Translations under genes and position numbers: made by a program | Source of the DNA: Octopus bimaculoides | Lineage: Eukaryota | Length of the DNA stretch: 57,883 bases | Assembly: GCF_001194135.2 (NCBI RefSeq) | Contig: NC_069000.1 | Location: 14,848,298 to 14,906,180, forward strand | Direction: 5' to 3' | Part shown: positions 1-30,938 of the stretch, piece after piece | How the letters are laid out: each line of letters begins with the position of its first letter | Numbering within the stretch: position 1 is the first letter of the stretch | Notes under the pieces: generated by a model | Databases searched by the model: none | The model's input: the letters and a program-made list of their open reading frames with translations, nothing else | What the model was told of the DNA's origin: nothing

Positions 1-48
1 CTGTGCGCGCGCGCAACTATATTACATTATCTATGCGATCTATCGCCG

Positions 49-210
49 ATGCTGGTGTGTTTACGTCCCCGTAACTTCGCGGTTCGGCAAAAAGAGACCG
101 ATGGAATAAGCACCAGGCTTACAAAGAATAAGTCCTGGGGTCGATTTGCTCGACTAAAGGCGGTGCTCCAGCATGGCCGCAGTCAAATGCCTGAAACAAG
201 TAAAAGAGTA
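49..210 (+). mobile_element. SINE family A, 3' half
   Basis: The tail GTGTTTACGTCCCCGTAACTT...GGTGCTCCAGCATGGCCGCAGTCAAATG...GAAACAAGTAAAAGAG recurs in many copies (12879, 17225, 19290, 23850, 26075, 31830, 34720, 37850, 49060). Confidence 0.9.
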
Positions 211-1129
211 ATAAAAAAGTAAGCACTGCTGGCACATCAGTAATTCATGAAACAGAACTTAATTGCCAAGTATATGTCAAAAATTCAAATCATTCTACCT
301 GACTGCATTGTAAACGTAACATCACTAGCTACGAATACAATTTCGCAGGGACTTTTTAAAAGGTTAGGTATTTGCTTGTTAATGGAAATCTAATAAAATA
401 GAAAACTCCAGCCGATTCCTCTTATATTAACCACGTAAAGGTTTGTCATGTTTATTATATACAACCAACATCCTTGCGGACAGTAAAAGAAGGATTGACT
501 GGTTAACGTAATTTTCTAGTTTATGATGAACATGACAGACGTTTACGACTGTCTCATTCATGTATCGAGTACAAGGCTGTGACGGCTAAAATCTTTGGTT
601 ATAGTTAAGCCTTAATGTGTGTATGTGTCTGTTTGTGTGCAATATATACATATGCATACATGCATATGTATGTATGTATATATGTGTGTGTGTATATATG
701 CGTATATATATTTGGTAATTTTTCAGATTAATACGCACACGATCTTCACTAGGGTGTTAGGCCTATTTTTGGTGACAGGTTCCGGAAGCTGGGCCTTGCT
801 TAACCATTGCTCATGCACGTTCAGATAGCGGAAAAATATCTCTCTTCGGATAACTTGGTTCACTTCTTGCGCCCACAACGCTTCATTAACCAAGAGGAGG
901 TGGAAGTTTCAGCGACGGAGTTCTTCATCCCTCTCTCATCTTTTTTTTTTTTTTTGCGATGACAGGAGACAGAATTTGAACTCACCACACACAGAACCAA
1001 AACAGATACTGAAAGGCATCCCACTGGTCGCTCTAGCATTTCATCAAAGCAACCGCCCTGAAGTTTTACTTTATTGACAGTAGCGAAGTCGTAGCGAGTG
1101 TCAAATAGAATGAATACCTACTATATTTG

Positions 1130-1267
1130 TTACGGTGATATGAGTTCAAATCCTCGCCGAAGCCCAGTTTGCTTTTCCTCTTTTCGGGATCGATGAAATA
1201 AATACCAGTTGAGTACTGAGGTCGATGTAATCAACTAGACCCCACTTCATAAAATTTCAGGCCTTGT
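1130..1267 (+). mobile_element. SINE family B, partial
   Basis: TGAGTTCAAAT...TTTGC(C)TTT(C)ATCCTTTCGGGGTCGAT...AGTACCAG core shared with more than 15 copies in the window; truncated by the gap. Confidence 0.8.
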
Positions 1268-2244
1268 NNNNNNNNNNNNNNNNNNNNNNNNNNNNNNNNN
1301 NNNNNNNNNNNNNNNNNNNNNNNNNNNNNNNNNNNNNNNNNNNNNNNNNNNNNNNNNNNNNNNNNNNNNNNNNNNNNNNNNNNNNNNNNNNNNNNNNNNN
1401 NNNNNNNNNNNNNNNNNNNNNNNNNNNNNNNNNNNNNNNNNNNNNNNNNNNNNNNNNNNNNNNNNNNNNNNNNNNNNNNNNNNNNNNNNNNNNNNNNNNN
1501 NNNNNNNNNNNNNNNNNNNNNNNNNNNNNNNNNNNNNNNNNNNNNNNNNNNNNNNNNNNNNNNNNNNNNNNNNNNNNNNNNNNNNNNNNNNNNNNNNNNN
1601 NNNNNNNNNNNNNNNNNNNNNNNNNNNNNNNNNNNNNNNNNNNNNNNNNNNNNNNNNNNNNNNNNNNNNNNNNNNNNNNNNNNNNNNNNNNNNNNNNNNN
1701 NNNNNNNNNNNNNNNNNNNNNNNNNNNNNNNNNNNNNNNNNNNNNNNNNNNNNNNNNNNNNNNNNNNNNNNNNNNNNNNNNNNNNNNNNNNNNNNNNNNN
1801 NNNNNNNNNNNNNNNNNNNNNNNNNNNNNNNNNNNNNNNNNNNNNNNNNNNNNNNNNNNNNNNNNNNNNNNNNNNNNNNNNNNNNNNNNNNNNNNNNNNN
1901 NNNNNNNNNNNNNNNNNNNNNNNNNNNNNNNNNNNNNNNNNNNNNNNNNNNNNNNNNNNNNNNNNNNNNNNNNNNNNNNNNNNNNNNNNNNNNNNNNNNN
2001 NNNNNNNNNNNNNNNNNNNNNNNNNNNNNNNNNNNNNNNNNNNNNNNNNNNNNNNNNNNNNNNNNNNNNNNNNNNNNNNNNNNNNNNNNNNNNNNNNNNN
2101 NNNNNNNNNNNNNNNNNNNNNNNNNNNNNNNNNNNNNNNNNNNNNNNNNNNNNNNNNNNNNNNNNNNNNNNNNNNNNNNNNNNNNNNNNNNNNNNNNNNN
2201 NNNNNNNNNNNNNNNNNNNNNNNNNNNNNNNNNNNNNNNNNNNN
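1268..2244. other. Assembly gap (N run)
   Basis: N run. Other gaps: 13124-13151, 13991-14490, 22409-22822, 26783-27160, 30142-30288, 33754-33763, 36058-36351, 37384-37630, 44714-45127, 47416-47760. Most abut microsatellites or poly-A. Confidence 1.
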
Positions 2245-2375
2245 TATATATATGCGCATGTATGATTTAGTATTTATAAGCGCATGCAAGCCTGAGTGAG
2301 CGTACAAGATGTATACATACATAGATACTGCGCTGCTCCCAGCTCTTGATGTGTTATTTTATCTTCTTCACTTAC

Positions 2376-2602
2376 CAATCGGAGCTTTATTTGTTTTGTT
2401 TTGTTTTATTTTTTTTTTCCTTATTTTCTTTTTAACAAACACACACTAAAAAACCTGCTTGTCTACTTAATTGTTATGTGTGTGTAGCACAATGGATCAA
2501 GTAGCCACTACTAGCAAATATAGAAAGAAACATGTTGAAAATTGAAAAAAAACAAACAAACAAATGTTATCCAGAGCGACATAGCGTAAATATGTCTCTC
2601 AC
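2376..2602 (-). other. Candidate 227-nt non-coding exon / recursive-splice-like exon
   Basis: Minus strand: TTATTTCTTTTTATCTTTACAG|GTGAGA acceptor at 2603/2602 and TTG|GTAAGT donor at 2376/2375; stops in all frames. Confidence 0.3.
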
Positions 2603-3757
2603 CTGTAAAGATAAAAAGAAATAACTGAAGTTATTAGGTCAGGTGATAGCATGAGAAGTTAAAGTGGCGGTGGTATACAGACAGGTTAGTTTAGTTTAGT
2701 TTTGTTAGCTAGCTCGCTAGTTGTGTGTAAAGAACGACGATATTATAGGATGTTTGATCGAATTTTGTTTCCTTATAATTTTCCCTCTCTCTGTTTCTGT
2801 AACGGGAAATGACCGAGAAAATATGTTATAATTTTTTTTATTCATTAATGAACATTACACTTATAGTAGGAGCAGGAAATATGAACATTACGATTATAGT
2901 AAAGAGCAGGATATTGACCGAGCGGTATAAGGACATATCTAAAATATTTGAAATAGTCACCTACTAAGGTAACATTCATCCACAGGTGGTTTTGAAGGCA
3001 CATATACTTGAAAGGGATAGCTTGAACTTCCGCTGGTGACTACATCGAGGAGACTAAATTTTGACAACTTTTAATGTGTTATTACATTTAATTATCATCA
3101 AAAACGGTAACAATAAAAACAAATTATCGAGAAGAACAAAACACTCCGGAAATACGCAGCATTAAATAGGATCTTAAGATTTTAAATCGTAAAATTTTTC
3201 CAAAGAAATTTTTAAAATCTTGTAAATAAAAACATGTAAATATATATATATATACCCGAACGTATTAATTTGGATTTACAGCGTCGTTTTCCGAAGGTAA
3301 GAAACAGTTGATTATCCATATATATTTATATGCATGTGTATATGTTTATAAAGATGATAGGATATGAAAGTGGCAGGTACTAACAACTTAGGTGTCACGT
3401 GTAATGTTGAATGGGTTTGCTTGACAACTTAGAAAACACTTCTCTTGTTTGTTATTATCTTTATTGATTGTACTTTTAGTTTAAAAATGGGTGGCTTTGT
3501 GCCAAAATACAATAAAATATATTCGGATATCTATGTACAAAGTGTGGGCTGTTTCTTTTTGCACGATTTGACTTGAGAAAACATTTATCTTAAAATTAAC
3601 TATCGGTGCAGTTATTTAATTATAAGGTAATTATTTACTTTCGTCTTTCTTTGGAGAATAATTAGTTATCTCTGTCTATTTAGCAATATCTATCTGTCTA
3701 TCTATCTATCTATCTATCTATCTATTTATACACATACACACGCACCCCCAAATAAAC

Positions 3758-3797
<40 letters not shown>

Positions 3798-3800
3798 TAT

Positions 3801-3845
3801 CATCATCGTTTAACGTCCGCCTTCCATGCCGGCATAGGTAGGACT
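3801..3845 (-). mobile_element. RTE-type retroposon 3' tip with (GAT)n tail
   Basis: Reverse complement of ...GCATGGAAGGCGGACGTTAAACGATGATG; same tip at 11161-11250, 32930-33025, 36570-36750 and 52630-52690. Confidence 0.7.
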
Positions 3846-4567
3846 ATAGATATGTGTGTGTGTGTGTGTATGTATGTACATGTGTGTGTATATATATATA
3901 TATATATATCTCTATATATATATATATATATGGAGAGAGAGAAAGACACAGACGTATAAGTATAAAGTACATACATACATATGCATTTGGTATTAGTGTG
4001 TGTGTGCTAGCGCGTACACACACACACACGCATGGTTGAATAAACTGTTAATATCGAAACTTGAAAACCCAGTCAATCCAATATTATCAATAAAATCGAC
4101 TCTGAATGCATAGAATTCCCATCAGCAGTAAATGTCTCTCACCGAAGTCGATCAACAATACCAAATGCGTGTATGTATACATGTATATATATTTACACAT
4201 ACATATTTGTTATGTGTGTTTGTATGTATGTACATAGATATGTAATCTACTCAGATATACATGTATGTGCGTGTGAGAGGAAATATAGTGATTTATATTT
4301 AAATGATTTCCTCAATGAAGGAACATTTCATGTTAAGGTTCTGACGAAAGTAGATATCACACTGTGGCATTCATCTCTGGGTGCACTGTTCAATAAAGCA
4401 GAAACAGTGGTAAGGCAATGAATGTCATTACGTAACTCCTGTTTCTTTGCGTGCAGGACGATGTTTTCTTACTTCCTACTTTGCAGCTCCCAGAAAGTCA
4501 TAGCTTACCGATCGCAACCTCTTTGACATTGGCTTGCTCTAGTACCTAATACCCATTTCTATCATTT

Positions 4568-4618
<51 letters not shown>

Positions 4619-4977
4619 TTTGGTAAAAGGATGTGACATCACGAGTTATTGACAGTGCTTTATTAGTTCGACAGAGCTGAACTGTCAAACACACACACAC
4701 TCACCCATGAGACTGACATCATATACTAATACCAAAACATTGGCTCTGTGTTTGTGTGTGCGCGCGCGTGTGTATGTAAGGTACGAACATGCTCGTGCCT
4801 GTACAACTCTTAAATCCACAAAATGTTTCACTAGAGAAGAATAACTTAATTGTTAAGTGAATATTGTCATGTTTATATTTTCTTATTCAGTATTTCCTGG
4901 TAACTTCACTTCTAAATTAAACTCTTAAAATTCCACCTACACCGAGAGATAGAGATAGACAGATAGATAGATAGGGT

Positions 4978-5184
4978 ACTACTAAAGCAGCGCGGACCCG
5001 AACGCGCAGTCGCGCGTCCGCGCTAGCTAGTCTTGAGTGGTCGATCCTAACCCTAACCCTGTCCCTAACCCTAACCCGCGTGTGCAAATGAATACGTGTT
5101 TAGGGTTAGGGTTAGGATCGACCACTCACGACTAGCTAGCGCGGACGCGCGACTGCGCGTTCGGGTCCGCGCTGCTTTAGTAGT
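4978..5184. mobile_element. Palindromic (foldback) element with internal telomeric repeats
   Basis: Arms 4978-5060 and 5102-5184 are 83-bp inverted repeats with one mismatch (5033/5129). 41-bp spacer; CCCTAA repeats on the left and TTAGGG repeats on the right; embedded in a (GATA)n tract. Confidence 0.85.
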
Positions 5185-5188
5185 TCCG

Positions 5189-5222
<34 letters not shown>

Positions 5223-6060
5223 AATGAAATAGGAAAGCAAGAAGAGATAAAAGATTATATATATAGATTTACATACACGTGTATATATGTTTAAGTAACG
5301 ATGAAGTACGCGAATACACATTTGTGTACTTGGCTTCCGGCAGTTTCTTCTATTAATGTCCAATTTCTATATCAGTGAAGATATTTAATTTATTTAATTA
5401 TTAATTAGTTACTAAATGTTGTAACATCGTTTCCACTTTTTAGCCTTCCTTCTGACATTAGTTTCAGGTTGATTAATTACATGCTTAACGTTTGCCTATT
5501 GTATCTGACATGTTTTATCATTGTACATTCACATACACAACCTTCCAAATGGAAAGACAAGACAAAACAAAGGAAATAAACAAAAACAAAACAACCTCCT
5601 CCTGTTAATATTGTCTACTTTTTCTTCTTTTAATTTTATGTTGTGCGTATTGGCTTCATTCACTCTTCCAATTCCACGTTATATAAAAGTAATAAAGAAC
5701 TGAGAAAGGTTCCACTTAGTCATTTACACTATACTCATGAATTAAGAAAAAAAAAAAAAAATTCGCAGCCAAACTTCATTCCTAATTATAGCCTTAATGT
5801 GTGTGTGTGTGTGTGTGTGTGCATATGGCATACTTACACAAGTGTGCCTCTCTCTGACTTTGTTTTCTTAAAGCCTAGAAAAATGGATATTCTTTTGAGG
5901 AAATTTTCTACAAAATACCTTTCAGATGGTCTAGATCAGTGGTTCCTAAAGTGCACAGTACTTCTCCTTTCGGGGCGGTGAAAAGTGGGATGATAATGGG
6001 GTGGCCAAAATGGGGTAATAGATGTAAAAAAAATATATATTATTAGCTTTAAGTTTTATT

Positions 6061-6620
6061 GGATCTTTTTTAAAACGGGGGCCACATTTTTCATTAACGA
6101 AACACTTTGAAACTTGGAACACTGGTAGAATGTGTCATATAAAACATCTTTTTCTCTTAGTCTTCTTAAAAAAAAAAAGAAATCCCTAAGTTATTCCATG
6201 TTAAAGTTGTCGTATTTCTGTAATTTCAACCATTCACTGACGTCCATTCAGCCGATATACATTAAGTGCTGACTACATAAACAAACGATTCTGAAACAAT
6301 TCTATCGGTGATAGGGTTAGGGTTAGGGTAAAACAGCAAATTTAAAAAGAAAAATGCAAAACGAAGCTATGGAAATTAAATACGCTTTACACCGCTTAAT
6401 CAGCCAAAGGAGTAAATGTAAACAACTGATTACTTGTCAGTGATTGGTTGAAATTATCGAAATAAGACAATTTTTTACATGAAATAAATTCGAATACAAA
6501 AATATTTTTCTGTTCTATAACACAAAATAGATAAGTATACGAAGTTTGAAAGTCTTTCGGTACCAAAAACACTACGTAAAACATTAATGAAAAATGTGGC
6601 CCCCGTTTTAAAAAAGATCC
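6061..6620. mobile_element. Nested non-autonomous DNA transposon, Merlin-like (MULE as alternative)
   Basis: Perfect 37-bp TIRs GGATCTTTTTTAAAACGGGGGCCACATTTTTCATTAA (6061-6097, 6584-6620); 8-bp TSD GTTTTATT at 6053-6060 and 6621-6628; GG termini. Boundaries are solid; the superfamily is inferred. Confidence 0.8.
6312..6328 (+). repeat. Short interstitial telomeric repeat
   Basis: TAGGG-TTAGGG-TTAGGG near the middle of the nested element. Confidence 0.8.
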
Positions 6621-6861
6621 GTTTTATTTGTGAGATACAGTCGTTTTGAATTTTCTGCAGAAAATGGTCTATATTTGTGGTGAAGAAGGGTTAGGGGGTG
6701 CTAGGAATGTGGCCTGGGTGCCAAAAGGGGCGGTAAACTGAAAAGTTTTGGGAACTACTGGTCTAGATTACGATGGTAAAGTCATTGTTAGCCGATCACA
6801 ACAAACACTGTTTTCTATTTGTAGTTTTAAGAGATACAACAGCTGTAACTGAAAAGATTTG

Positions 6862-7405
6862 TTAGTCCGCCTTTATGGTCCTGGAGAACAAAATGGAAAG
6901 GACCATAAGGCTTATGGTCCTGGAGAACAAAATGGAAAGGACCATAAGGCTTATGGTCCTGGAGAACAAAATGGAAAGGGCGTTTTCTAGGAGGATGGCG
7001 AGGAGATGCGCTGTAACAGCAACTCCAATAGCAGAGGGCAGGGATGAAGTCCGGCCATGAACACCGGAGGTCTTCACAATTTCGGGCTCGACCACGAATC
7101 TGTCAGCGACCGATACTTTGACAATTTGCTCTTCTCGGCCTGACGAGTAGCGAAGTCTGGGCTGCACCTGAATACACCAAGTTGCCGTTGGAGAAGGTAT
7201 AGCAATATGTGACAACCGAGATGAGGGGCCCTACCACCGCGGTGCGGGAAAACTGTCATGCAGTCTGGCTCGAGCTGGGAAGGAAGTCTACGGCATCTAG
7301 ACCACATGCTTTATGATCCCGTTGAGAGCAGCCAGTACTATAATGGCAGGACAATGGGGTGGTCCGAAAGAATTCACAGTGGATCTGCAGTGGCATTTGT
7401 GAATA
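6862..7405 (-). pseudogene. Decayed 3' end of a restriction-like-endonuclease (CRE-like) non-LTR retrotransposon ORF
   Basis: Frameshifted minus-strand mosaic: HKCHCRSTVNSFG-HPLSC (CCHC knuckle), AALNGIIKH, LEPDCMTVFPHRGGR, PLISVVTYCYTFS, AEKSKLSKYRSLTD, VKTSGVHG, LLAILLENALSIL. These follow, in order, the recalled RHxxLNDII..RPDGxTLxPW..GxxLxWDATCxDT..AExxKxxKY..PxAVETxGxxG..QRGNA motif series of CRE-like elements. Confidence 0.75.
6873..6979. repeat. 39-bp tandem repeat (2.7 identical copies) with internal hairpin
   Basis: Unit TTATGGTCCTGGAGAACAAAATGGAAAGGACCATAAGGC at 6873, 6912 and 6951 (partial); stem (C)TTATGGTCCT / AGGACCATAA(G) around a 16-nt loop. Confidence 0.95.
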
Positions 7406-7548
7406 TATGAAATCCCTTCTTAAATTGAAATGTTTTAGACTTACTTCTGTACTACTCTCCCCCTCCAGTGAGGGGGGGGGGCATATACCCGACAGGTACC
7501 ATTCGGTCTATAGTGTCTTAGCATTTTTTTTTCTTATCGGGTGAAGCC

Positions 7549-7980
7549 ATGGCACTGTGGACGATAGAGCATTGCGTGTTTGCCTACGATAATTACGTGA
7601 AAAATAACGGGTCTGTCACAGCAGTTCAACGTGAGTTTCGGCGCCACTTCAACATTCACCGAAATTAGGCTGTACCAACCCGCAACACAATCTTACGTTG
7701 GGTGAATGCACTTCGTACACGAGGTACACTAAGGAATAGGAGACTGGTAGGGGCGCCACGAACAGTACGGACCCCGGAAAATGTGGAACGCCTCAGACAA
7801 GCTTTCAGAAATGCATCAATGAAAATGGATACCACATGATGGATGTTGTTTTCCACACTTGATTCTGACAAATGCTAATGCAATACGAACACATTGATGT
7901 TGATAAAATTTGTTTGCGGCCAAAATTAAGGATTTTGTGAATTTTTCAAAAAACGTCCGTCCTCTCTGCCCCACCCAGTA
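7549..7980 (+). mobile_element. Internally deleted Tc1/mariner-superfamily element (DUF4817-type HTH transposase remnant)
   Basis: ATG at 7549: MALWTIEHCVFAYDNYVKNNGSVTAVQREFRRHFNIHRN*AVPTRNTILRWVNALRTRGTLRNRRLVGAPRTVRTPENVERLRQA, with one stop at 7666. It jumps to the C-terminal-like QKCINENGYHMMDVVFHT* (ends 7862). The right end ...CCCCACCCAG|TA resembles a Tc1/mariner TIR plus TA; the left TIR was not found. Confidence 0.85.
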
Positions 7981-10055
7981 CACACACACACACACACACA
8001 TACATACATACACGCACATTCATACGCACACGCCTACACACACGCACAGTTTTGCAACAACAGATAGGATATCTTCAATTTAACTTTGGGCAATTTTTGA
8101 TTTTTAAGCACAATTAATTACTTTAATTTATTCTTGATTTATTGTTTTCTTTTTTTTTCTTTTTACTTTTTTCCCCTTTCCGATCTTTATTTACAGAAAC
8201 ATCTCAAAATGACTTGTTTTAAATTTCAAAGCACAAATTATTTAAAATTAATTCTAAAAATTTAAATTGCTGTTGTTCGTTTCCTACAGTCTACATATCT
8301 ATCCAACTACTTTTAATTGTTACCCAAATTTCACACCTCTCATTACTTTTAATTGAAGAAAGAAAAGGGGTAGGGAGAAAGAGAGAGGGGGATGGAGAAA
8401 TTGTTTTGTGTTTGTGTATATTTTTGTTTTCATTTTCTTTAACATTGATCCTTCTCCAATGTTTAATCATTAGACATTATATAATGCATATAGCTTCGTT
8501 TATCACGGGTTCGTTCATCACTGGTCCAGGATAACACGGTATGCTAATTGTGAACGCTTATTGTGATAAACAAAAGGCAAGAGGATCACGGCTGGAGTGG
8601 TGAGTTTTCTCGGTCAGGGTCGACTTAAGATGAAATAACACGTGTCCTCTGGAAACATCCAGAAAAAGAAACAAAAACTCAAGAACTTATCAGTTTTCTT
8701 CCTTTATCTTTTTTTAATGTTGTTTTGAATTCTTTATCTTTGATTACCTTCATTTACTTCTCATTATGTTTCACTTAATTGCAAACATTTAATGAGCTGT
8801 AATCATACATTCCATTCACAACGAGGAAGTCTGTGTGGACGCTCGAGCTCTTAATCAAACATCTTGCATATCACGGTTTCTACTGTCTTAGAAAGAAAAT
8901 AAAAGAACACATTTAAATAGTGTTGTCCTAGAACTTTTAATAAGACGGAACAGTTACGATTGAAATGTTGGATCACAGATGACCTGTGGTTATACAACAG
9001 CAACACACTGCGGTTTTCTAATTGATAAAAACAAAACTTCATAGTCGTATATTATTGTTGTCTATTCTTTTTTCCTCTTCTGTGTGTGTATTTTCTTGTG
9101 TAGGGCCTGTGTGTTTTGATCCCTTCTTTAGTCGCCTTTCATTAGGTATTTCGCAACAGAAAGAAACAACTGACTAAATAAATAATAATTCTTTATGTGC
9201 TGCACCTGATTAATTAACGATATATCAGACTCAATTGAACATAATCCTTCAATAAAACCTGGATAAGAATGGATTTAGATAAATCACAGGTTTTAAGCTT
9301 GAATAAAAACAAAACAAAAAACAAAACAAAAAATCCTTCATATTGTATAACTGATTTGATTGTTTTTTATATCGTAATTGAACAATATCGTCCTAGATTA
9401 CTGCAGGTTTCCTGCAGATCAATCACGAGTTCACTGAATTTCTGATGTGAGTGACAAGGGTTTGTCTTTAAGGATCAGTCGAGGAGCACTTTGTGCAAAA
9501 GTTTCTGTACATATATCTTCGTTAGTTTATAAACAACATTACTGCCACAACGTCACATCCCAAGACCTAACTACTTAATAGATTACTTTACTTCTATGGG
9601 CCTTCTTCCCTGATCTACATCGTTTCCTGGTCTTCTTTGTCGTATTGATAAACGTTTATCAAATATTTTCTTATCTGTTCAGGATATTTAAGAAATATTA
9701 CATTTGTTTCACTGTTCCAAGCCCTTTGGGTCAAACGGAATATAAAATTCTATTTTACGTGGTCGCTGTCGCCCTTTGTTTTTCTCTTTTTACTTTTAAA
9801 ACTATTCTGTGAAACAACTTATCTCAATGGGTGTTATGAAATAGGAAAAAAAAAACCCTGAGCAGCAATCAATCAATCTGTACACTACAAATGATTAATT
9901 AACGAAATACCTGACTTAGTTTCACATAATAAATAATTCAAATAAGTCTGGGAAAGTATAGATTCAGTAGAATGGAATTCTGCCGCTGCTGTACCAATTC
10001 TTGAAAATAAAAATAAAGCTAATGTAATAGAGATTTGGTTGCTGGCCAGGAGGCG

Positions 10056-10549
10056 AAATTTTTTTTCTCACAAGAGTTCCGAACCCCAGCAATGAACTCA
10101 TTTGTATACAGCCAATCAGAGCTCACGTTGACCTTGTTGTAAGTCGACCGATCGCCAAATTATGCCTGATTTTAGGAGACAAGTAATTAGATAGATTTGC
10201 ATCTATACCTATGATCGGATATTGTTAGGGGCCCCATTTAGTAAAGATGTGAATGGGAAAATGTGAGTAGAGGGTGATGTGCTAGCAACCGTCTCCCTTT
10301 ACTGTTTTAGAAAGTAAACAACAACACAAATAACTACGCAGAGGCAACCATGGTTGAGACAAGAACAAGATCAACAAGCATTATTAAAAGAGAAAAGAAG
10401 CATGGTCATTCCTTACCCAAGTGATCTTATCTTATCGCCCATCACTTGTTATGCGCTCATAAATTATTTTGATAGTTGAGCTCTGATTGGCTGTATGCAA
10501 ATGAATTCATAACTGGGGTCTGGAACTCTCATGGGAGAAAAAAAAATTT
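10056..10549. repeat. About 70-bp inverted repeat pair carrying CCAAT and octamer motifs
   Basis: 10056-10125 versus the reverse complement of 10477-10549, roughly 85% identical by eye. Both arms contain AGCCAATCAGAGCTCA next to ATTTG(C/T)AT. Confidence 0.8.
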
Positions 10550-10596
10550 GCGGCCGAGAGCTGTTGGAGTTAGCCATTTGTTATTTTACCAAAAGC

Positions 10597-10909
10597 TGTT
10601 ACACCGAATAGCAGTAGCTAGTGTGTGGAAATGTTATGTTTTTGTGCTTGGTGAGATGGGAGAATGTGTCTTCGTCATTGGTGAACGGGGAGAATTGTTA
10701 TATGTGTTCGTGATTGGTAGGAGATATTTTTACATGAGGTCAGAACAGCATGGCTGCTGGCAGACCAAGAAAGTCTCTACGAGCCCTCTCGAATCTCTCT
10801 GTCTTGTATTTCCAGCGCATATCAATTGTGGTTTGAAGGCACGTAAATAAAGTCGTTCTTACCTCGACTTGCAATCGGGTACCGCCGGCAGATTGTTCAA
10901 TTCGTAACA
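10597..10909 (+). mobile_element. Possible solo LTR
   Basis: Starts TGTTAC and ends GTAACA, with AATAAA at 10846. The flanks (AAAGC / CATGT) do not form a TSD. Confidence 0.3.
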
Positions 10910-10927
10910 CATGTTGTCACGACCTCT

Positions 10928-11009
10928 CTGTCGCCATGTCTAACTTCTATCGCCACGTCTAACTTCTGTCGCCACGTCTAACTTCTGTCGCCACGTCTAA
11001 CTTCTGTCG
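10928..11009. repeat. 19-bp minisatellite, 4.3 copies
   Basis: Unit CTGTCGCCACGTCTAACTT at 10928, 10947, 10966 and 10985, plus a partial copy; two single-base variants. Confidence 0.95.
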
Positions 11010-11149
11010 TAGATATCATAAAAAAGGGAAACTTTTCTTCTCACTCGCCAACGTGACGTCATTTCTTCCCCTTCCAGTCTCCCTTCCACCACACGCACCT
11101 CTGATCCAAAGATCACTGCTCCCCTGTTCTGTCTCGTAATCGTCCATCC

Positions 11150-11250
11150 AGCTCCTATCAAACCGTCCAACCCATACCAGCATGGAAAACGGACGTTAAA
11201 TGATGATGATGATGATGATGATGATGATAATGATGATGATGATGATAATG
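11150..11250 (+). mobile_element. RTE-type retroposon 3' end with (GAT)n tail
   Basis: AAACCGTCCAACCCATACCAGCATGGAAAACGGACGTTAAATGATGATG... Confidence 0.75.
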
Positions 11251-12878
11251 ATCTGAAGCGAAACTGCATGGAATTTTCCATTTATCTTAACATCACACAA
11301 ATGTACCAGAACAACGTTTGGCTGAAATATGGGTCAACATCCTCTGCTGATAAGGACCATCGCTGCCAAATATAGGAACTGATATGCTGTGGCCTTTTCT
11401 CGTTCCTGAAACGACAGGGTTTCGAATGCTGACTACTGCTACACCAGTAACTCTGATAGCCTTCTGACCTATCTCAATTATCTGAAACATTGGCAAATTG
11501 TTTAGCGCATTTAGTCGATTACAAAATTTTGGATTTCTTATGTTCTAATATTATAATTTCATCTACTCAGCTACAGACTGCTTCAGGCTAATTATTTTCG
11601 AAACTTAGTCTGACCTTGAAAATTAAAAAAAATTACTCCTGCAATTTTTTTTTTTTTTCTTGGTTTAGCTGTAGCTTTTAATATTTATACCCAACGAAGC
11701 TATCATACAAATGCTTCCTCTGTTTACGGAATACATAATCGTCTTTTTAGATAAATAGTGAAGCCACATTCTTCATTGAAGAATTCAAATGGTTAAAGTT
11801 TGTGATCCATTCTGCGATGGAAGCATGATAGCTCCAATCTCATTTCTTTTTATTTAATAATGACATTACTGATACTTATTTTGGTCCAAATACGTTGGTT
11901 TCTAACAACCATGGAAACATGTTTATCTATGCCAACAACACTATACTTATTACTACACGTTCTTTACTATATTGATGCTATCGTACAATAAAAGAAAACA
12001 TGACTTACATCCTACTGTAGATAGGACATGTAAGTGGGACATGTACTTTAGCAGGAAAAAACAAAACAAAAATAAAGGGTAAAAATGCTGGTTTATTCTT
12101 TTGTGAACCACATGGAATGCTATCAACCACAACACACACACACACACACACACACATTGTGTGACTTATTATTTTTACAAGCATACATAAATATCGGGGA
12201 TTTTGGCGTACTGCTGCTGTCAAATTTAACCGCCAAATTCATCATGTATACAAAATGATTTCACCTCACCTATTTCTACTTCGTAGACCTATTGTATTAC
12301 CTGTCTGATGAAGCTATGTTTCCACAAATATATAAAAGCAACAACATTCTTCCCCTAATTTGACTCTGTCTTACCTACTTGGGTTGCACAAAATTTATTT
12401 CAGGAAGATTTTTTTCGAGAAACTTCATAGGCAAACTATAAAGGTTGTCCTAAAATATCTACCACATCTACTGATCGTAACACACAACACTTACCTAATC
12501 TTTGTGATGGAAGGAATTTTGGCTTAATTTACTGTACATTATATTAGCTATTTACTGAACATTATATTACCTATTTTTTCACCTAGGATGTATCAATCTT
12601 ATCTCTTTTTACTCCATCCAAAATTTAAGCTACTTGACACCAAACTCTGCTCTTCCTATTCCATGGACGATCATAAAGGTAGTTGTCGTTACTTTTTTTT
12701 TTTTTTTACCACTTAACTACTCAATTCCATGCCTGCTCTACGGAATACAAACACACGCCTGGTGAAACTTTCAAGAATAATTTATGATACACATCGAACG
12801 CAACAATATTTATAGTGAAATTCTAGCATCTCAATCTTCTTCTTCTTGTGTGTGTGTGTGTGTCTATCTATCTATTAT

Positions 12879-13074
12879 TCTTTTACTTGTTTCAGTCATT
12901 TGACCGTGGCCATGCTAAAGCACCACCTTTAGTCGAACAAATCGACCCCACTACTTATTCTTTGTAAGCCTAGTACTTATCCTATTGCTGTCTTTTGCCG
13001 AACCGCTAAGTTATGCGGATTTAAACACACCAACATCAGTTGTCAAGTGATGGTGGGAGGACAAACAGACACAC

Positions 13075-13123: not shown

Positions 13124-13270
13124 NNNNNNNNNNNNNNNNNNNNNNNNNNNNGGGCTTCTTTCAGTTTCTGTCGACCAGATCCACTCACAAGGCTTTGGTC
13201 AGCCCGAGGTGTCACGCGGTTGAACTGAACCCGGAACCATATGGTTGGGAAGCAAGCTTCTTACCACACT
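12879..13270 (-). mobile_element. SINE family A, near full length, with an internal (TA)n spanning a gap
   Basis: Reverse-complement tail at 12879-13075, (TA)n plus N gap, and reverse-complement tRNA-like head at 13152-13270. Confidence 0.85.
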
Positions 13271-13621: not shown

Positions 13622-15600
13622 TTAATCTATTTATATAAAATCTAAGGAAACTATGGAATTTCTGAAGTATACCCAGTAACACGTGCATCTCAACTGTATG
13701 ATGACATCTGGTAGCCAATAACTGTGGACGAACTTTGCACAGCATTCTACAAGTTTTTTTTGTTGTTTTTTTTAAATCCGAATCTCACTTGTCCAAATAC
13801 TTAAAAATATATAGCTGGATGCTATATTGGTATGTTGAATGATTTTCTAAACCCGTATGTTCGCAAATGGTTGATTTCTGTAGTTATTGTCAGTGTTTTA
13901 TTTCGGCGATTTAAATAAGAGTTTTGGCTGTTATTTCCCGCAGGTAGACATACTCAGTATGCCCTTTGATTATGTATATGTATATATATANNNNNNNNNN
14001 NNNNNNNNNNNNNNNNNNNNNNNNNNNNNNNNNNNNNNNNNNNNNNNNNNNNNNNNNNNNNNNNNNNNNNNNNNNNNNNNNNNNNNNNNNNNNNNNNNNN
14101 NNNNNNNNNNNNNNNNNNNNNNNNNNNNNNNNNNNNNNNNNNNNNNNNNNNNNNNNNNNNNNNNNNNNNNNNNNNNNNNNNNNNNNNNNNNNNNNNNNNN
14201 NNNNNNNNNNNNNNNNNNNNNNNNNNNNNNNNNNNNNNNNNNNNNNNNNNNNNNNNNNNNNNNNNNNNNNNNNNNNNNNNNNNNNNNNNNNNNNNNNNNN
14301 NNNNNNNNNNNNNNNNNNNNNNNNNNNNNNNNNNNNNNNNNNNNNNNNNNNNNNNNNNNNNNNNNNNNNNNNNNNNNNNNNNNNNNNNNNNNNNNNNNNN
14401 NNNNNNNNNNNNNNNNNNNNNNNNNNNNNNNNNNNNNNNNNNNNNNNNNNNNNNNNNNNNNNNNNNNNNNNNNNNNNNNNNNNNNNNNNNNATATATATA
14501 TATATATATATATATAATACAAATAATATATGAGTATATGCATATATACGTACATATATGTACATACCTACATCTACATGTATATATAGATGCATATCTG
14601 GGTACAGGACGCTGCAAAAAAAAAACGTGGACAAAATGATAAACGGAGTACAGAAAATACACAGGCCACATAGAGAACATCTCCTTCATCAGCTGCCACC
14701 ATTCTAAAACTAAGCGTTTCGAAGAGTTATAGATTCTTTTGCTCTCCGTCTGCTAACATGTTTAGTATATTTGAAAACCCAATCGTTTGCTTACTTTATG
14801 TTGATTACCTGAACGAAGCTGTGAGTGCTACACTAGTGTGTATGTATTCATTCTTTTTTTTTCTTTTTTTTCTTTCTATTGAATAAACGTTTGACAAACA
14901 CACAAAATAAAAACCTTTATTACTTATTTATGTTCGTAACATAATTACTTTTACAACTCATTTGACCAATTTCTATCTAAATAAAGTAATTATTTATTTT
15001 AAATCTCTTTTGTGCAAATTTTATTGTTAGAGTGACAGCTTATAAAAAAATCTTCGTTGTATTTTTCACTCTCGTTCTGTATTTTATTTCTCATCCTTCG
15101 TTGTATTTTTCATTTCTCCTTTTTTTATTTCCAATATTTTTTGTCTTTTTGTTTCTCTACTCTTCCACTTCCATCTTTATCTATATCCTTTATCTATTTG
15201 GCGATCTTTCGAACGTTGCACATTTAAAATGGCTGGCAAATCGCAACACACTACAGCAAATTAAAAATGAAACGTAAACAGTAAATCGTTAAAAATCGGC
15301 AATAAAGGCAAAAGTTAATTACCAGGTGTTCATCACACAATGTTCTCACGCCATTCATCAAATACGTCGCATTACTATCCTGTTTAATTATTGTATTTCA
15401 GTTTCCAAATTTAAAAAAAAAAGAAGAAAGAAATGAAATCAAATGCATTTTACACAAAATAAGATTTTACAATAATTGTCGATGATTTATCTATCTCTTA
15501 GTTGTTTTGATCAGTGAACTGCGGTCATACTAGGGCACCACCTTGAAGGGTTGAATCAAACAAATCAACCCTAGTTCTTATTTCTTTTAAAAACTTAGTA

Positions 15601-15858: not shown

Positions 15859-16139
15859 TATTCTATACTTTCCTTTTGTCTAACTGCACAGCTACGAAGA
15901 CGTAAACAAACCAACACCGGTTGTCAAGCTGTGGTGTGGAACTACACGCGCGCGCGCGCACACACATATCCACTTCCTAGCTATTGCTGGAAATCGTTTA
16001 TAGCTGAATGGACTGAAACAACATAAAATGAAATATTTTGCTCAAGAACACTATGCACCTCCCTTTCTGAGAATTGAAACCATAGTCTTATGATTGCAAG
16101 TGCAACAATCTTAACCACCAGACCACATGCCTTCACAGC

Positions 16140-17350
16140 ATTTTATTTATTGGTTTCAAATTTTGGCAGAAGGCCAGGGGGTTTTAGGGGAGGGGCTAAG
16201 TCGATTAAATCCCCAGTGTTCAACTGGTACTTATTATTTTATCAACTCCAAAAGGATGAAAGCCAAAGACAACCCCCAGTCGAATTTGAACTTAGAACAC
16301 AAAGACTGATGAAATGCCACCAAGCATTTCTCCCAGCATGCAAATGGTTCTGCCAGCTCGCTGCCTGATGGTATCTTATTTATTGACCTCAAAAAGATGA
16401 ATGACAAAATCGACAATGTGGAACTCAGAAGCATCGAAAACCAGAAGAAATTCTACAAGAAATTCTATCCAATGCTTTAACGACTTAGTTAACTTGCCTT
16501 CTCGTCATTGATTAATTTAAACACTGGCAAGGCAGCCTCTCCATCCTGTAATGGAATGCATTATGGCTGTTATTTTACTGTTTTTTTTCTTTTTGCTTGA
16601 TACTACTACGAATAATATTTTCTTCTTCTTCGTTATAGAGTTTCATTTGTATGTATCTTTACATTTAGGCTAATAAAGATTTCTTCTACTTCTTAATATA
16701 CAGTCTGAGTTCTTTCTTTTCTCATTTTTTTCTTCACTTTCTTTTCTATTTCCTTCTTTCTTCCACTCTGTCTTTTCTTTTATTTAAGAGATTGCCTTCT
16801 TGTGTCAATATTTGTACATACCAAGGTGGTGAGCTGGTAGAAACGTTAGCACACCGGGCGAAATGCTTAGCGGTATTTCGTCTGTCTTTACGTTCTGAGT
16901 TCAAATTCCGCCAAGGTCGCCTTTGCTTTTCATCCTTTCGGGGTCGATAAATTAAATACCAGTTGCTTACTGGGGTCAATCTAATCGACTGCCCCCCCCC
17001 CGCCCCAAAATTTCGGGCCTTGTGCCTAGAGTAGAAAAGAAAATTTGTACATACTCTCTAAGGTAGCGAGCTGGCAGAATCATTAGCATGCTAGGTAAAA
17101 TTCTTAGCAGCATTTCACCTGTCTTAAAGTTCTGAGTTCAAATTCTGCTGAGTCGACTTTACCTTTCATCCTTTCAAGGTAGATAAGATAGGTACCAGTT
17201 GGTAGATAAGATAGGTACCAGTTGGAGACCGATAGAATAAGCACTAGGCTTAAGAAATAAGTCTTGGGGTCGGTTTTATTTGACTAAAAACCCTTCCAGG
17301 CAGTGCTCCAGCAAGGCCATAGTCAAAATGACTGAAACAAGTAAAAGGAG
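16140..17350. mobile_element. SINE cluster: family B minus copies 16140-16420, plus copies 16826-17040 and 17060-17223, and a family A tail 17225-17350
   Basis: Direct similarity to the other family A and B copies. Confidence 0.85.
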
Positions 17351-17645
17351 ACATGATAATATCCTTTCCTTGATAATAAAGAGGCTAAGTAATTCTGTTG
17401 GAGTGCTTTAGTATTAGAGAAATGGAAATAAGGAAATTACTTAAAGACAGACAAATCACCATTGATGATGTACATCTTGGATTTCTTAAAGAAATAGCAG
17501 AGAATATTGCAAAGCCATGAACAATTCTTTATCAATAATTTCTATAATTAGAACAATTACCCAATAAGAGCGTTGTGGTTGACTTGAAGAATTGTAATAT
17601 TGAAGAAGGTAAAAAGAGAGAAAACAGGAAAGCTTCTGACAATGC

Positions 17646-17843
17646 GGGTAGTTTTATAAAACCTTTATATTTCAGGTGCAAAGGCCCATTTTCAGGAAAA
17701 AAAAAACAAAAAAAAACATAATCTAGGAAATGTCCAGTTATGCAGATTTTGTTAATGGAACCTGCATAACCGGACATATCCCAGATTGTTTTTCTTCTGA
17801 AGATGGGCCTTTGTGCCTGAAATATAAAGGTTTCTAATTACCC
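17646..17843. mobile_element. Foldback MITE-like element
   Basis: AAACCTTTATATTTCAGG..CAAAGGCCCAT.TTCAG (17658 onward) is inverted at 17790-17833. A second inner stem ATCT.GGA.ATGTCC.GTTATGCAG surrounds a loop of about 10 nt; GGGTA/TACCC outer ends; no TSD found. Confidence 0.7.
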
Positions 17844-18109
17844 AAGGTTGAGAAAAACAAGGGTTTATGTTTATACTCAAGGAAAAAAAAAAAAAACCAG
17901 AGCAAAGCAGAAAATTACAAACCTGTAACTTGAATGGTGATGTTATGTAAAATCTGGAAAAGAGTGGAAGGAAACTAATAAAGGGATTTTATGAATAAAT
18001 ATATTTTTTGTACCAAGAAACAGTGCATTTTTTTTTTTTGCGTGTGTGTGAAGAAGACTTGTAGTTATCCTTCTCGATGACTTGCTCAGAACAAAGCCTG
18101 ATACAGCAC

Positions 18110-18320
18110 GCTCGTAGAACTGGTAGCACACTGGATGAAATGCTTAGTGGTATTTTGCACATCACTACATTCTGAGTTCAAATTCTGCTGAGATTGACTT
18201 TGCCTTTTAATCTTTCAGGGTCGATAAATTAAGCACCAGTGAAACACTGGGGGTCGATGTAATCGACTAGTTCCCTCCCCTCAAATTTCAGGCCTTGTGC
18301 CTTTAGTAGAAATAATAATT

Positions 18321-18354
<34 letters not shown>

Positions 18355-18379
18355 CCACCACCACCACCATCACCATCAC

Positions 18380-18415
<36 letters not shown>

Positions 18416-18710
18416 TATTATTATTATTATTATTATTATTAAAAGAAGGTGGTGAGCTGGCAGAATCATTAGCATGCTAGGTAAAATGTTTAGCAGCACT
18501 TCGTCCATCCCTACATTCAGAGTTCAAATTCCACTGAGGTCAACTTTACCTTTCATCTTTTTTTTTTGCGGGGGTGGGGGTCAATGAAATAAGTACCAGT
18601 TGCACACTGGTGTCAAAGTAATCGGCTGATCCTCTTCTCCAAAATTTCAGGCCTTGTGCCTGTAGTAGAAAGAATTCTTCTTCTTCTTCTTCTTCTTATT
18701 ATTATTATGA

Positions 18711-18741
<31 letters not shown>

Positions 18742-18966
18742 TAATAATAATAGTTTCGAATTTTGCTACAAGGGCAGCTGTTTTGGGGGGAGGGGATGTG
18801 TTGATTACATGAACCCTCAGTGTTCAACTGGTACTTTATTTATCAACCCTGAAAGGATGAAAAGCAAAGTCAACCTCGGCGGAATTCGAACTCAGAACGT
18901 AGTGACAGGTGAAATACCGCTAAGCATTTTGTCCAGCATGCCAACAACTCTGCCGGCTCGCCGCCT
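18110..18966. mobile_element. Three family B SINEs (18110-18316 +, 18448-18676 +, 18753-18966 -) separated by trinucleotide tails
   Basis: Similarity to the family B consensus; (CAT)n(CAC)n(TAT)n at 18317-18440 and (CTT)n(AAT)n at 18677-18752. Confidence 0.85.
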
Positions 18967-19246
18967 TAATAATGATGATAATAATAATAATAGTAATAAA
19001 AGCAAAAGCTTCAATCAATATCTTACTGCAATCCAATTAAAAGCCACTTTGGTACCTTCATTTATATCCCACTGCATATTCATTGAGCTTCTACACAGTT
19101 GTTATTGTAAATGAATGTTGAGACATTGTCACTAAGGAAACAGCAGTTGCCGATAATAGTAGTGGCGATAGTAAAGCGATATGTAGGTGAATAAAGTACC
19201 TGGAAGTTGATTATTGACTTATAATAATCAGTCTGAAACTTTGACG

Positions 19247-19284
<38 letters not shown>

Positions 19285-19593
19285 ATGCATCTTATATCTT
19301 TTATTTGTTTCAGGTTTTGGAATGTGGCCATGCTGGGGCATTGCCTTGCAGGGTGTAGTCAAACAAATCAATCCTAGTTCATATTTTCAAGCCTGGTACT
19401 TATTCTATCGGTTTCTTTTTTTTGTTGAACTGTTAAGCTATGGGGACATAAACGAACCAACACCTGTTGTCAAGTGGTGATGGAAGACAAACACAAATAC
19501 AAACACAAACACACATGCACATAAGAGGCATCAGATGTGGTGTGCAAGAAAGAAGATTGCACTAGTATGGTCATGTGATGTGGATGGATGAGG

Positions 19594-19982
19594 TTGTTGT
19601 TGTTGGCACTCCGTCGCTTACGACGTCAAGGGTTCCAGTTGATCCGATCAACGGAACAGCCTGCTCGTGAAGTTAACGTGCAAGTGGCTGAGCACTCCAC
19701 AGACACGTGTACCCTTAACGTAGTTCTCGGGGATATTCAGCGTGACACAGTGTGACAAGGCTGACCCTTTGAATTACAGGCACAACAGAAACAGGAAGAA
19801 AGAGTGAGAGAAAGTTGTGGTGGAAGAGTACAGCAGGGTTCGCCACCACCCCCTGCCGGAGCCTTGTGGAGCTTTAGGTGTTTTCGCTCAATAAACGCTC
19901 ACAATGCCCGGTCTGGGAATCGAAACCGTGATCCTATGACCGCGAGTCCGCTGCCCTAACCACTGGGCCATTGCTCCTCCAC
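19594..19982 (-). mobile_element. Full-length young tRNA-derived SINE with (CAA)n tail and 13-bp TSD
   Basis: Minus-strand A box TGGCCCAGTGG and B box GGTTTCGATTCCC; tail GCCAACAACAAC; TSD TGGATGGATGAGG at 19581-19593 and 19983-19995; 3' fragment of the same family at 55401-55483. Confidence 0.92.
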
Positions 19983-21365
19983 TGGATGGATGAGGAAACC
20001 TGTATAAAGAAGTGCCATTTGCTAAATGGCCTAGAAAGACATGGAATAAAGTGGTGCAGACTGCACTCAATATGTTGAGCCTCACAGAAGAGATTATGGG
20101 GGCCTGAGATGAATGGCAATAGGTATAATCACATAGGTATAATCAATAGGTATAATCACATAGAACTGACAGTGAAATAATACAACATCGTAGACATCAA
20201 ATGCTGATAAGATACTGTAATTATATGAATACCAAATCCAATTAATAATGAATGATCTGACATTCACTGGTGGATTCTTGGTGTGGCATAAATATAAAAT
20301 AATAATACATGAATGATATTTAAATTTGTGACAGCTCTTCCGGTAGAACTTTATTCAATGTAGTCATAAAAGATTACATCATTTGCATTCAATCATCTTC
20401 AGGCATAATTTAAATGATCAACCTGGATATAGCTACTTCTTGTAATATAAATATGCATATGTACAGCTCATATAAATGAATTACTGCCATAGATGTCTGT
20501 ACACAGAGTGTTGGCTAAAATCTGTAGATATATTCTGTAGTACAGATTAGCATTTAAACAAAACAATTAGCATTGTTGTTGTTAACCTTTAGCATGCTGG
20601 AGGAGCATCATGTCACCATTTGAGTTTTCTCCCTTCTCAATATTACAATGTGCCAATAGCTACAGGTGAGAAAACTCTATAGTGCCATAATGTGTCTAAG
20701 CATACCAAAGATTAATATGAGACTAGTCACGATGAACCAAATCTATAACCAGAGGCATTCCAATTCAATCATGCCCATTCCATCTATTTTCCCCCAGAAA
20801 TAAACACATCACGGAATACATTATCCATTGTTTCCTTGTGTCCCCTTTTAGGATGTTAAGGTATGATTCAAGGGAGATTTGGCTGCTAGTTTCAGTAAGT
20901 TGTATGAGTAAGTTAGGAACTTCCTCATTGACTCAAAATTAATTTATTAATTTTTTTTCAAGTAAATATGAAATCTAGATTGAAAGTGTTGTCACAGAAT
21001 AATAAGATTTGTGTGGGTTGGTCTGGCTGAAAATACATTTGGCTACAAGGAAAATAAATATTATGAAACCAATATTAAATGTTGAATCGTTGAGATGTTA
21101 GACATCTAAATTAGGAATAGTTGAACAGTATACATATGATACTGTAAAGGAAAACAGATACTACCAAGAAATGAAATAGCCGTAACTGATATTAGATCTG
21201 ATTGAACAGATCTATGAACAAAGATGTTTGTAAGAATCATGTTTTAGTTATGCATACTCAGGATCACATCACTGGTTCTGATTACACTGTGCTCCTGGCA
21301 AAAAGACACCTAGCTATCAATGGTCCTTTTTAAACTGGTAGCAAAAACAAAACAATCAACAATTC

Positions 21366-21679
21366 AAACAGTGGGAGCACTTTCAAGTGAAGGATGTTAT
21401 TAATTTAGAGTGTTGAATCCATCCATGAGAAAAACCTATCAAAGATAAGTTCAAAAATTTATAGCATAAATGCCAGAGAAGGGTGTTGTCCCTTCTCTGG
21501 ACTTCATGACTTCATAGCATCAAACCAAACTGTAGGAGTGCTTTCAAGTGAGGTATGTTATTAGTTTGGAGTGTTAAATCCATCCATGAAAAAAGTCTAT
21601 TACAAATAAGTTCTAAAATCTATAGCTTGAAAGTCAGAGAAGGGTTCTTGTCCCTTTTTTGGTTTTCATAGCATCAAAC
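21366..21679. repeat. Diverged tandem duplication (about 160 + 153 bp)
   Basis: AAAC.GT.GGAG..CTTTCAAGTGA...ATCCATCCATGA.AAAA...CAGAGAAGGG...TTCATAGCATCAAAC occurs twice, at 21366-21525 and 21527-21679. Confidence 0.85.
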
Positions 21680-23849: not shown

Positions 23850-24040
23850 GTGTTTGTCTTCCACCACTGCTTGACAACTGGTGTTGGTGTATTTACATCC
23901 TTGTAACTTAGCAGTTTGGTTAAAGAGATTGATAGAATAAGTATCAGAGTTAAAAAGAAAATATATACTGGGGTTGATACATTTGACTAAAATTCCTCAA
24001 GGCAGTGCCCCAGCATGGCCACAGTCTAACAACTGAAAGA
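23850..24040 (+). mobile_element. SINE family A 3' half (CpG-decayed)
   Basis: Similar to 49-210, with CpGs converted to TG/CA. Confidence 0.8.
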
Positions 24041-24049
24041 GAGATGATC

Positions 24050-24235
24050 CGTTGACTGAACACTATTCAATTTTTTTTCTCCGTGTTTTTCTCCTTGTCT
24101 CTGTATTCTTTCTGTTGAAGAGCGTAGCTTGAAACGTCAAAGACTTTCCGTATTCCCGAGCGTCATACTAATATATACTTTTGTTATTTACACCACCTGT
24201 CCTCGTCTGTTGTTATTATTTGTATATTCTCCCAT
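24050..24235 (+). mobile_element. Possible Penelope-like element terminal fragment
   Basis: TTGAAGAGCGTAGCTTGAAACGT resembles the recalled CTGAAGA...CGAAACG motif of Penelope-like pseudo-LTRs; motif-level evidence only. Confidence 0.4.
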
Positions 24236-25125: not shown

Positions 25126-25199
25126 TTGTGTACCGTTCAGTGATGGTTAGATCAACAAAAAAAAAATACTCCATCTGGTGAGAGATAAGTAGTATTTAA

Positions 25200-27813: not shown

Positions 27814-27873
27814 CTGTATATCAATGTAAAGTAACATTCTCTGATGAACTCAATATCTTTTCCCCACAGATAA
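27814..27873 (-). CDS. Candidate 60-nt symmetric (phase 2-2) exon, YLWGKDIEFIRECYFTLIY
   Basis: Acceptor ATCCTGTTTAG| and donor CAG|GTATTC; only one open frame; no homology recognised. Confidence 0.15.
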
Positions 27874-28149: not shown

Positions 28150-28190
28150 TGTATACACATATGCCCATACATACACACACATGTATGTAT

Positions 28191-30937: not shown

Positions 30938-30938
30938 T

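Follow-up and report, generated by a model that had tools for sequence, protein, structure and literature searches.

A 213-bp palindrome enclosing telomere-type hexamers within a (GATA)n microsatellite of Octopus bimaculoides, possibly a small foldback-type element

The locus described here raises the question of how a long, nearly perfect palindrome with telomere-type repeats came to lie inside a simple microsatellite of Octopus bimaculoides. The window, which refers to the whole stretch of DNA analysed (57,883 nucleotides, 58 kb in round figures), was searched for repeats. The inverted repeat proved to be real and consists of two arms of 86 nt each (4975-5060 and 5102-5187), which are 98% complementary and lie 41 nt apart. 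The whole palindrome comprises 213 bp (4975-5187), 172 of which are within the arms. An earlier description of the locus, referred to here as the sequence-only reading, had reported a near-perfect palindrome of 207 bp; its inverted repeat stands, while its span does not, since the sub-arms of 83 nt with one mismatch (4978-5060 and 5102-5184, 98.8%) are the inner part of the 86-nt repeat. In a base-by-base check of the latter, the only non-complementary positions were 4977/5185 (T:T) and 5033/5129 (T:C). Folded as single-stranded DNA, the 213 nt form one hairpin of -119.3 kcal/mol, compared with -36.2 +/- 3.5 kcal/mol for 200 dinucleotide shuffles (z = -24). The palindrome is also rich in GC and CpG in AT-rich surroundings, as described before, with 58.7% GC, 26 CpGs and a CpG observed/expected ratio (o/e) of 1.42, as opposed to about 36% GC in the window and a CpG o/e of 0.55-0.89 in the kilobases flanking it.

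The left arm (plus strand) begins with a unique outer domain of 71 nt (4975-5045), in which the terminus GGTACTACTAAAG is followed by a CpG-dense block. This block contains the small palindrome CTAGCTAG and a 9-nt internal inverted pair (AGCGCGGAC at 4989-4997 and GTCCGCGCT at 5016-5024), with mirror positions in the right arm. Next on the plus strand are a C-strand telomere-type array, identified by TRF as (CCTAAC)5.3 with 84% matches (5046-5077), a non-palindromic core or loop of 22 nt with the sequence GCGTGTGCAAATGAATACGTGT (5078-5099), and a G-strand telomere-type array, (TTAGGG)2.8 with 100% matches in TRF (5100-5116), which forms the inner end of the right arm. Apart from positions 5129 and 5185, the unique outer domain of the right arm (5117-5187, minus strand) repeats 4975-5045 as its reverse complement, and it ends in CTTTAGTAGTTCC; the counterpart of the terminus GGTACTACTAAAG is GGAACTACTAAAG here, and the boundary sequences of the element are GGWACTACTAAAG...CTTTAGTAGWCC. 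The two arrays thus face each other at exactly the positions given previously, and telomere-type hexamers fill the last 15 nt of each arm on its inner side. Only the first 15 nt of the left array pair with the right array and belong to the arm, and the remainder is an 18-nt duplication of CCTAACCCTAACCC plus 4 nt. It is this duplication (5046-5063, CCTAACCCTAACCCTGTC; 5064-5081, CCTAACCCTAACCCGCGT) that makes the hexamer arrays unequal. In total, the palindrome holds about 8 hexamers, and 6 telomere-type 12-mers were observed in the window where 0.15 are expected. The 213 bp contain no long ORF, as all six frames are interrupted or of low complexity, and no Pfam domains were found in ORFs of at least 35 residues between 2245 and 6850.

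TTAGGG is the only experimentally determined telomere motif of a cephalopod (Amphioctopus areolatus; PMC13218726), in line with its earlier designation as the molluscan telomere repeat. In the palindrome, the C-rich strand lies on the left and the G-rich strand on the right, so that the G-strand of the hexamers points outward, toward the element termini. The sequence-only reading had taken this polarity to argue against an end-to-end fusion, and the confirmed order of (CCTAAC)n ... (TTAGGG)n supports it: both a telomere-telomere fusion and the healing by telomerase of a cleaved palindrome or of gap-repair ends predict a G-strand array 5' of the C-strand array, i.e. (TTAGGG)n before (CCCTAA)n, and are rejected by the reversed order. 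Interstitial telomeric sequences that originate from fusion or healing, such as the human 2q13-type head-to-head array, consist of (TTAGGG)n followed by (CCCTAA)n. They share with the palindrome short internal hexamer arrays in both orientations; however, the order in the palindrome is reversed, and its arrays are embedded in an inverted repeat with 71 nt of unique sequence. The ciliate elements TBE1 and Tel-1 are inverted-repeat class II elements that contain the host telomere repeat in their inverted repeats, but the telomeric repeats are found there at the extreme termini, whereas in the palindrome they occupy the inner end of each arm and are separated from the element ends by 71 nt. By analogy with foldback elements, we read the hexamers as short tandem repeats that form an inner arm domain, uncommon but minor within the element, and not as a working telomere.

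The palindrome is bordered on both sides by the same microsatellite, so that its reported location inside a (GATA)n tract holds. On the left, TRF identified (AGAT/GATA)5.5 after GA-rich bases (4953-4974), and on the right (GATA)8.5 followed by (GA)n in the same orientation (5188-5221). Together, these flanks make up a single compound microsatellite, which would have been the insertion target, with (GA)(GATA)n to the left of the palindrome and (GATA)n(GA)n to its right. Since the microsatellite is the same, has the same orientation and becomes seamless after deletion of the palindrome, it bears the signature of an insertion and not of a local duplication. Furthermore, no second copy of the arm sequence was found elsewhere in the 58-kb window, which indicates that the palindrome was not made by inverting local sequence. 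Three models of the empty site were considered, namely a 9-nt model (element 4975-5187, target site duplication (TSD) GATAGATAG), an 8-nt model (element 4974-5187, TSD GATAGATA) and a model with no TSD, and all of them give a seamless (GA)(GATA)n(GA)n. The last 8-9 nt of the left flank and the first 8-9 nt of the right flank are accordingly possible TSD copies. The presence of GATAGATAG on both sides is compatible with the 9-bp TSD of FB-like elements, but the 8-nt and zero-TSD models fit equally well. Because each of the three models restores the repeat, any TSD would be masked by (GATA)n, and the previous statement that there is no clear TSD should not be taken to mean that none exists. A TA duplication, as made by Tc1/mariner or Stowaway-like MITEs, was rejected. 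It needs ends at 4979 and 5183, which leaves TA in the left flank but TT in the right one, and it is less parsimonious, as the TT must once have been TA and the microsatellite must have been interrupted by GGG..CC.

The explanation that we favour, and to which we give about an even chance, is that the 213-bp palindrome is a small non-coding class II element of the foldback/MITE type, inserted where a compound (GA)(GATA)n(GA)n microsatellite already existed. The arms, the continuity of the flanks and the absence of a long ORF show a non-coding inverted repeat of the foldback type inserted in (GATA)n, in agreement with the earlier proposal of a foldback element. Its length is below the limit of about 800 bp for MITEs, it is non-coding, and it has terminal inverted repeats (TIRs) of 86 nt with 98% complementarity; as in FB-like elements, the arms make up most of the element and have an inner part of short tandem repeats, with 5.3 versus 2.8 copies; and as in elements of the MuTAnT/SaTar type, the same microsatellite is present on both sides. 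In the proposed mechanism, a transposase supplied in trans would recognise the terminal and subterminal arm sequence, excise the element and reinsert it by a staggered cut, and the 8-9-nt duplication resulting from the insertion would be hidden by the tetranucleotide target. The 18-nt slippage duplication in the left hexamer array and the two base changes would be later events, dating from after the insertion or formation of the element. We infer the mobility of the element, as well as the length of its TSD, its transposase partner and its family status.

Drosophila FB and FB-like elements are composed of two long inverted arms with a unique outer part and inner short tandem repeats, the copy number of which is unequal between the arms. 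The layout of the palindrome, with a unique outer arm, unequal short tandem repeats in the inner arm and a small middle part, is by analogy of the foldback type. In both cases the arms are nearly the whole element, the non-repeated middle is small and the element is non-coding, and the 9-bp TSD of FB-like elements fits one of the allowed models. However, the palindrome is much smaller, and its inner repeats are telomere-type hexamers in 3-5 copies only.

A precedent for the insertion site comes from two reports on plants. MuTAnT elements are non-autonomous Mutator-like elements in (TA)n with a 9-nt TSD and GGGG/CCCC termini, and only the few copies that lie outside microsatellites reveal their TSD (PMC4486113). 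SaTar elements, likewise non-autonomous MULEs of small size, have various microsatellites as flanks, and the TIRs make up most of the element in some families, e.g. up to 180 bp in elements of 380 bp (PMC5907723). Micron and TAFT are cited in these reports as further non-autonomous Mutator-like elements that target microsatellites (PMC4486113; PMC5907723). MuTAnT and SaTar are a published precedent, by analogy, for small non-autonomous elements in microsatellites with a masked TSD. They resemble the palindrome in their small size, the same microsatellite on both sides, a location in which the repeat hides or would hide a TSD, termini that start with a G-run and end with a C-run and, in some SaTar families, the large share of the element taken by the TIRs. 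In contrast, they are found in plants and mostly in (TA)n, whereas the palindrome was found in an animal, in (GATA)n and with no mudrA-like partner seen, and the parts of their descriptions that were consulted make no mention of telomere-type repeats (PMC4486113; PMC5907723).

The element termini match the terminal motif of none of the superfamilies considered, nor was a transposase whose termini match them seen in the window. The closest coding remnant that could be recognised is a mariner-like transposase with a DUF4817 (HTH) domain at 7549-7980, which is internally deleted and interrupted by stops and has nothing in common with the element. At the DNA level, it is 86-89% identical to a contig of an ENA assembly (L002, ERZ25072293) that has no other repeat in common with the window, which suggests, on the basis of sequence likeness, that this transposon may have spread across distant hosts. 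Just upstream of it, at 6870-6975, there are about three tandem copies of a unit of about 39 nt (GGTCCTGGAGAACAAAATGGAAAGGACCATAAGGCTTAT) within a GC-richer stretch (48% GC in 7001-8000). The window as a whole is rich in (TA)n, (CA)n and copies of short interspersed repeats. One interspersed repeat occurs in several copies (11000-11281, 24841-25116, 32725-33021, 52327-52719 and others), and its translation ..SDLAKFLQLDALPNANHS..VVGAFTCH.. matches the C-terminal end of A0A0L8I061, an Octopus bimaculoides protein, with 85% identity; the repeat is probably exonised in the gene model of this protein. SINE-like copies of about 75-84% identity are dense (16078-16365, 16749-17057, 18593-19111, 30779-31012, 39181-39612 and 41596-41908) and partly arranged in inverted pairs, e.g. 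39181-39349 and 39444-39612 with 82% identity. The other long inverted pairs of the window are copies of interspersed repeats with 70-84% identity.

When the neighbourhood was compared with itself, a second inverted-repeat element of 560 bp (6061-6620) emerged at a distance of 0.9 kb from the palindrome. It has perfect TIRs of 37 nt (GGATCTTTTTTAAAACGGGGGCCACATTTTTCATTAA), an inner inverted pair of 39 nt with 87% identity, and an 8-bp direct repeat (GTTTTATT) on both sides (6053-6628 including the flanks), which is a clean TSD in unique DNA. When inverted pairs with an identity of 90% or more and a distance of up to 1.5 kb were sought, its pair was the only one returned. The palindrome itself is missing from this result, probably because BLAST reports a palindrome as a single self-overlapping alignment. 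Near its centre, the second element encloses (TAGGGT)3 at 6311-6329, the only other telomere-type array in the window, so that both telomere-type loci of the window sit inside inverted-repeat elements. Like the palindrome, it is a near-intact inverted-repeat element with a telomere-type array, in this case of three perfect units; unlike the palindrome, it is AT-rich and longer, at 560 bp, and has a single asymmetric array and a clear 8-bp TSD. Apart from the hexamers, no similarity between the two elements was found beyond the terminus (GGAACT/GGTACT versus GGATCT), where the likeness is weak (alignment with shuffle test, p ~0.01). The TIRs and TSD of this element indicate that recently intact short TIR elements are present in the genome and that hexamer arrays inside such elements are not unique to the palindrome.

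Further copies were sought in several sequence collections. Patterns of the arm terminus, the CpG block and the junction between arm and hexamers, scanned both as exact patterns and as patterns tolerant of CpG decay (Y/R), gave 0 matches in IMG/VR, the JGI metagenomes and the GTDB genomes. A blastn search in the 'distant' mode against plasmids and phages matched the hexamer part only, which makes an origin from a cloning vector or phage unlikely. Peptides from the open frames through the arm, as would be found in spurious ORFs of other copies, had no match among 5.8 billion proteins, nor did 14-15-mers of the arm, searched as text, across 8.3 million papers. The two ENA contigs with the DUF4817 transposon fragment (L001 and L002) contain no copy of the element and have nothing else in common with the window. 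The viral, metagenome, prokaryotic, plasmid and phage collections searched are without cephalopod genomes, and the missing copies are thus weak evidence that says nothing about the octopus genome. A literature search on telomere-repeat MITEs in molluscs and octopus found nothing specific.

Among the alternatives, the one that survives best, although we regard it as rather unlikely, is a one-off palindromic insertion that belongs to no transposon family and was acquired during repair of a break in a fragile microsatellite, by capture of snap-back (self-primed) DNA or cDNA. One possible variant is that cDNA was primed from a TTAGGG 3' end on an RNA ending in CCUAACCC and then copied itself after folding back. 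In its favour, both arms stop at exactly the same base beside the flanks, which would follow from the copying of one arm off the other. Within the 58-kb window, no more than one copy is known, and microsatellites are plausible break sites. In addition, priming of a template by a G-strand 3' end would yield the half-unit seen here, in which non-telomeric sequence comes after (TTAGGG)n. Such a layout is known for endonuclease-deficient Penelope-like elements and for endonuclease-independent insertion of LINE-1. The former (Athena and Coprina) carry C-strand telomere repeats after non-telomeric sequence on the sense strand and tend towards inverted arrangements, and the palindrome resembles them in both respects, but it has no reverse transcriptase, hammerhead ribozyme or telomeric location. 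A Penelope-like retroelement was rejected, as no hammerhead was found with Rfam at the gathering threshold or at E<=10 and no RVT domain in the ORFs of 2245-6850. The capture of snap-back DNA meets the same difficulty: neither the element nor its surroundings show a reverse transcriptase, a hammerhead ribozyme or any other mark of a retroelement, there is no poly(A) or one-sided tail, and no source was found for the 71-nt arm sequence. Moreover, with a TSD-flanked TIR element at a distance of 0.9 kb, it is simpler to assume ordinary class II activity.

It is improbable that the palindrome is an artefact of assembly or library construction, in which a chimeric foldback was made or the short-read scaffold was threaded wrongly across (GATA)n. 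The window is indeed gapped, with 11 N runs and 3,755 N bases in total (1268-2244, 13124-13151, 13991-14491, 22409-22822, 26783-27160, 30142-30288, 33754-33763, 36058-36351, 37384-37630, 44714-45127 and 47416-47760), and the position of these runs, mostly beside (TA)n or (CA)n tracts, marks it as a short-read scaffold. Inverted repeats collapse in de Bruijn graphs, and the palindrome is known here as a single copy in an assembled sequence. However, it lies inside a contig, with the nearest gaps (2244 and 13124) at distances of 2.7 kb and 7.9 kb, and microsatellite tracts of no more than 22 and 34 nt connect it to flanks of different unique sequence. Since an ordinary short read is longer than either of these tracts or an 86-nt arm, a mis-join in the graph appears unlikely. 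The asymmetric 18-nt duplication and the two mismatches are not produced by a simple one-strand foldback chimera, and plasmid and phage sequences gave no matches beyond the hexamers.

We consider it very improbable that the locus is a functional hairpin, such as a source of miRNA, hairpin RNA or siRNA, an ADAR substrate or a platform for telomere-repeat proteins, although an exapted insertion of this kind would be compatible with the foldback/MITE-type element. The long hairpin is very stable, and a sub-threshold Rfam match to the mir-1258 precursor (RF03863) was obtained, with 36 bits and E = 2.5e-5 over 261 nt, in which the layout 'GUGG..CCUAAyCCUAAC loop GUUAGGrUUAGG..CCAC' is common to both. 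However, 36 bits is far below the gathering score of 74 for mir-1258, a perfect stem of 86 bp is unlike animal pre-miRNAs, and there are about 8 hexamers in all. Judged by sequence, the match reflects a telomere-like hairpin layout in common and not family membership. The Rfam matches to mir-1258, mir-1303 and the Leu leader were set aside as generic hairpin matches below threshold; no family was found at gathering or permissive thresholds, and a literature search on a transposon origin of mir-1258 found nothing specific. The roles suggested in the sequence-only reading, namely recruitment of telomere-binding proteins, seeding of telomeres and formation or editing of dsRNA, find no evidence in the sequence, with about 8 hexamers and no Rfam family at threshold.

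The least probable origin is the remnant of a viral or linear-plasmid hairpin or inverted terminal repeat, e.g. of a parvovirus-like type, integrated at a break, since the GC-rich palindrome with a small internal hairpin in each arm, which would give a branched fold, is set against empty pattern scans of IMG/VR, a phage BLAST with nothing beyond the hexamers, no viral ORF nearby (ORFs of 2245-6850), no repeated short binding motif or recognisable nick site, and an internal hairpin that is only marginally better than shuffles when a single arm is folded by itself (-19.3 kcal/mol, z = -2.8).

The age of the element has also been addressed before, when it was called young. This statement was based on the arm identity only, and the retained CpGs say little about age. 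The CpG o/e is 0.76-0.89 across 2-13 kb, compared with 0.36 across 16-36 kb, so that the palindrome lies in a compartment without CpG depletion and its intact CpGs are no proof of youth. Across the window, the CpG o/e is bimodal, with about 0.2-0.5 in 16000-36000 and 48000-57883 and 0.8-1.6 in 1-13000 and 38000-47000. This pattern is consistent with mosaic (gene-body) methylation of the germline, with the palindrome in the non-depleted compartment.

A more far-reaching possibility, which we consider a long shot, is that a family of foldback elements exists in cephalopods, of which the palindrome is one copy, and that this family targets microsatellites and has host telomere repeats as its inner arms, in a fixed polarity with the G-strand outward. 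What backs it is the coincidence of two adjacent hexamer-bearing TIR elements and nothing further. If true, such a family would provide a mechanistic tie between transposon ends and telomere biology, for example if the arms were built or maintained by telomerase or by reverse transcriptase priming on an RNA ending in CCUAACCC, or if telomere-repeat-binding proteins served as host factors of transposition, and a second case of the same habit would be the TIR element next to it, with its (TAGGGT)3.

The palindrome alone leaves the known understanding of telomeres or transposons unchanged either way, and if no other copy exists, it represents a well-preserved case of palindromic insertion where a microsatellite broke. 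Long near-perfect hairpins of this kind are candidate fragile sites and sources of small RNA and, in coleoids, possible ADAR substrates. If copies exist genome-wide, the foldback/MITE-type element would be, to our knowledge, the first microsatellite-associated foldback MITE of an animal and an inverted-repeat element with the host telomere repeat inside its arms, which would be useful for the annotation of repeats in cephalopods.
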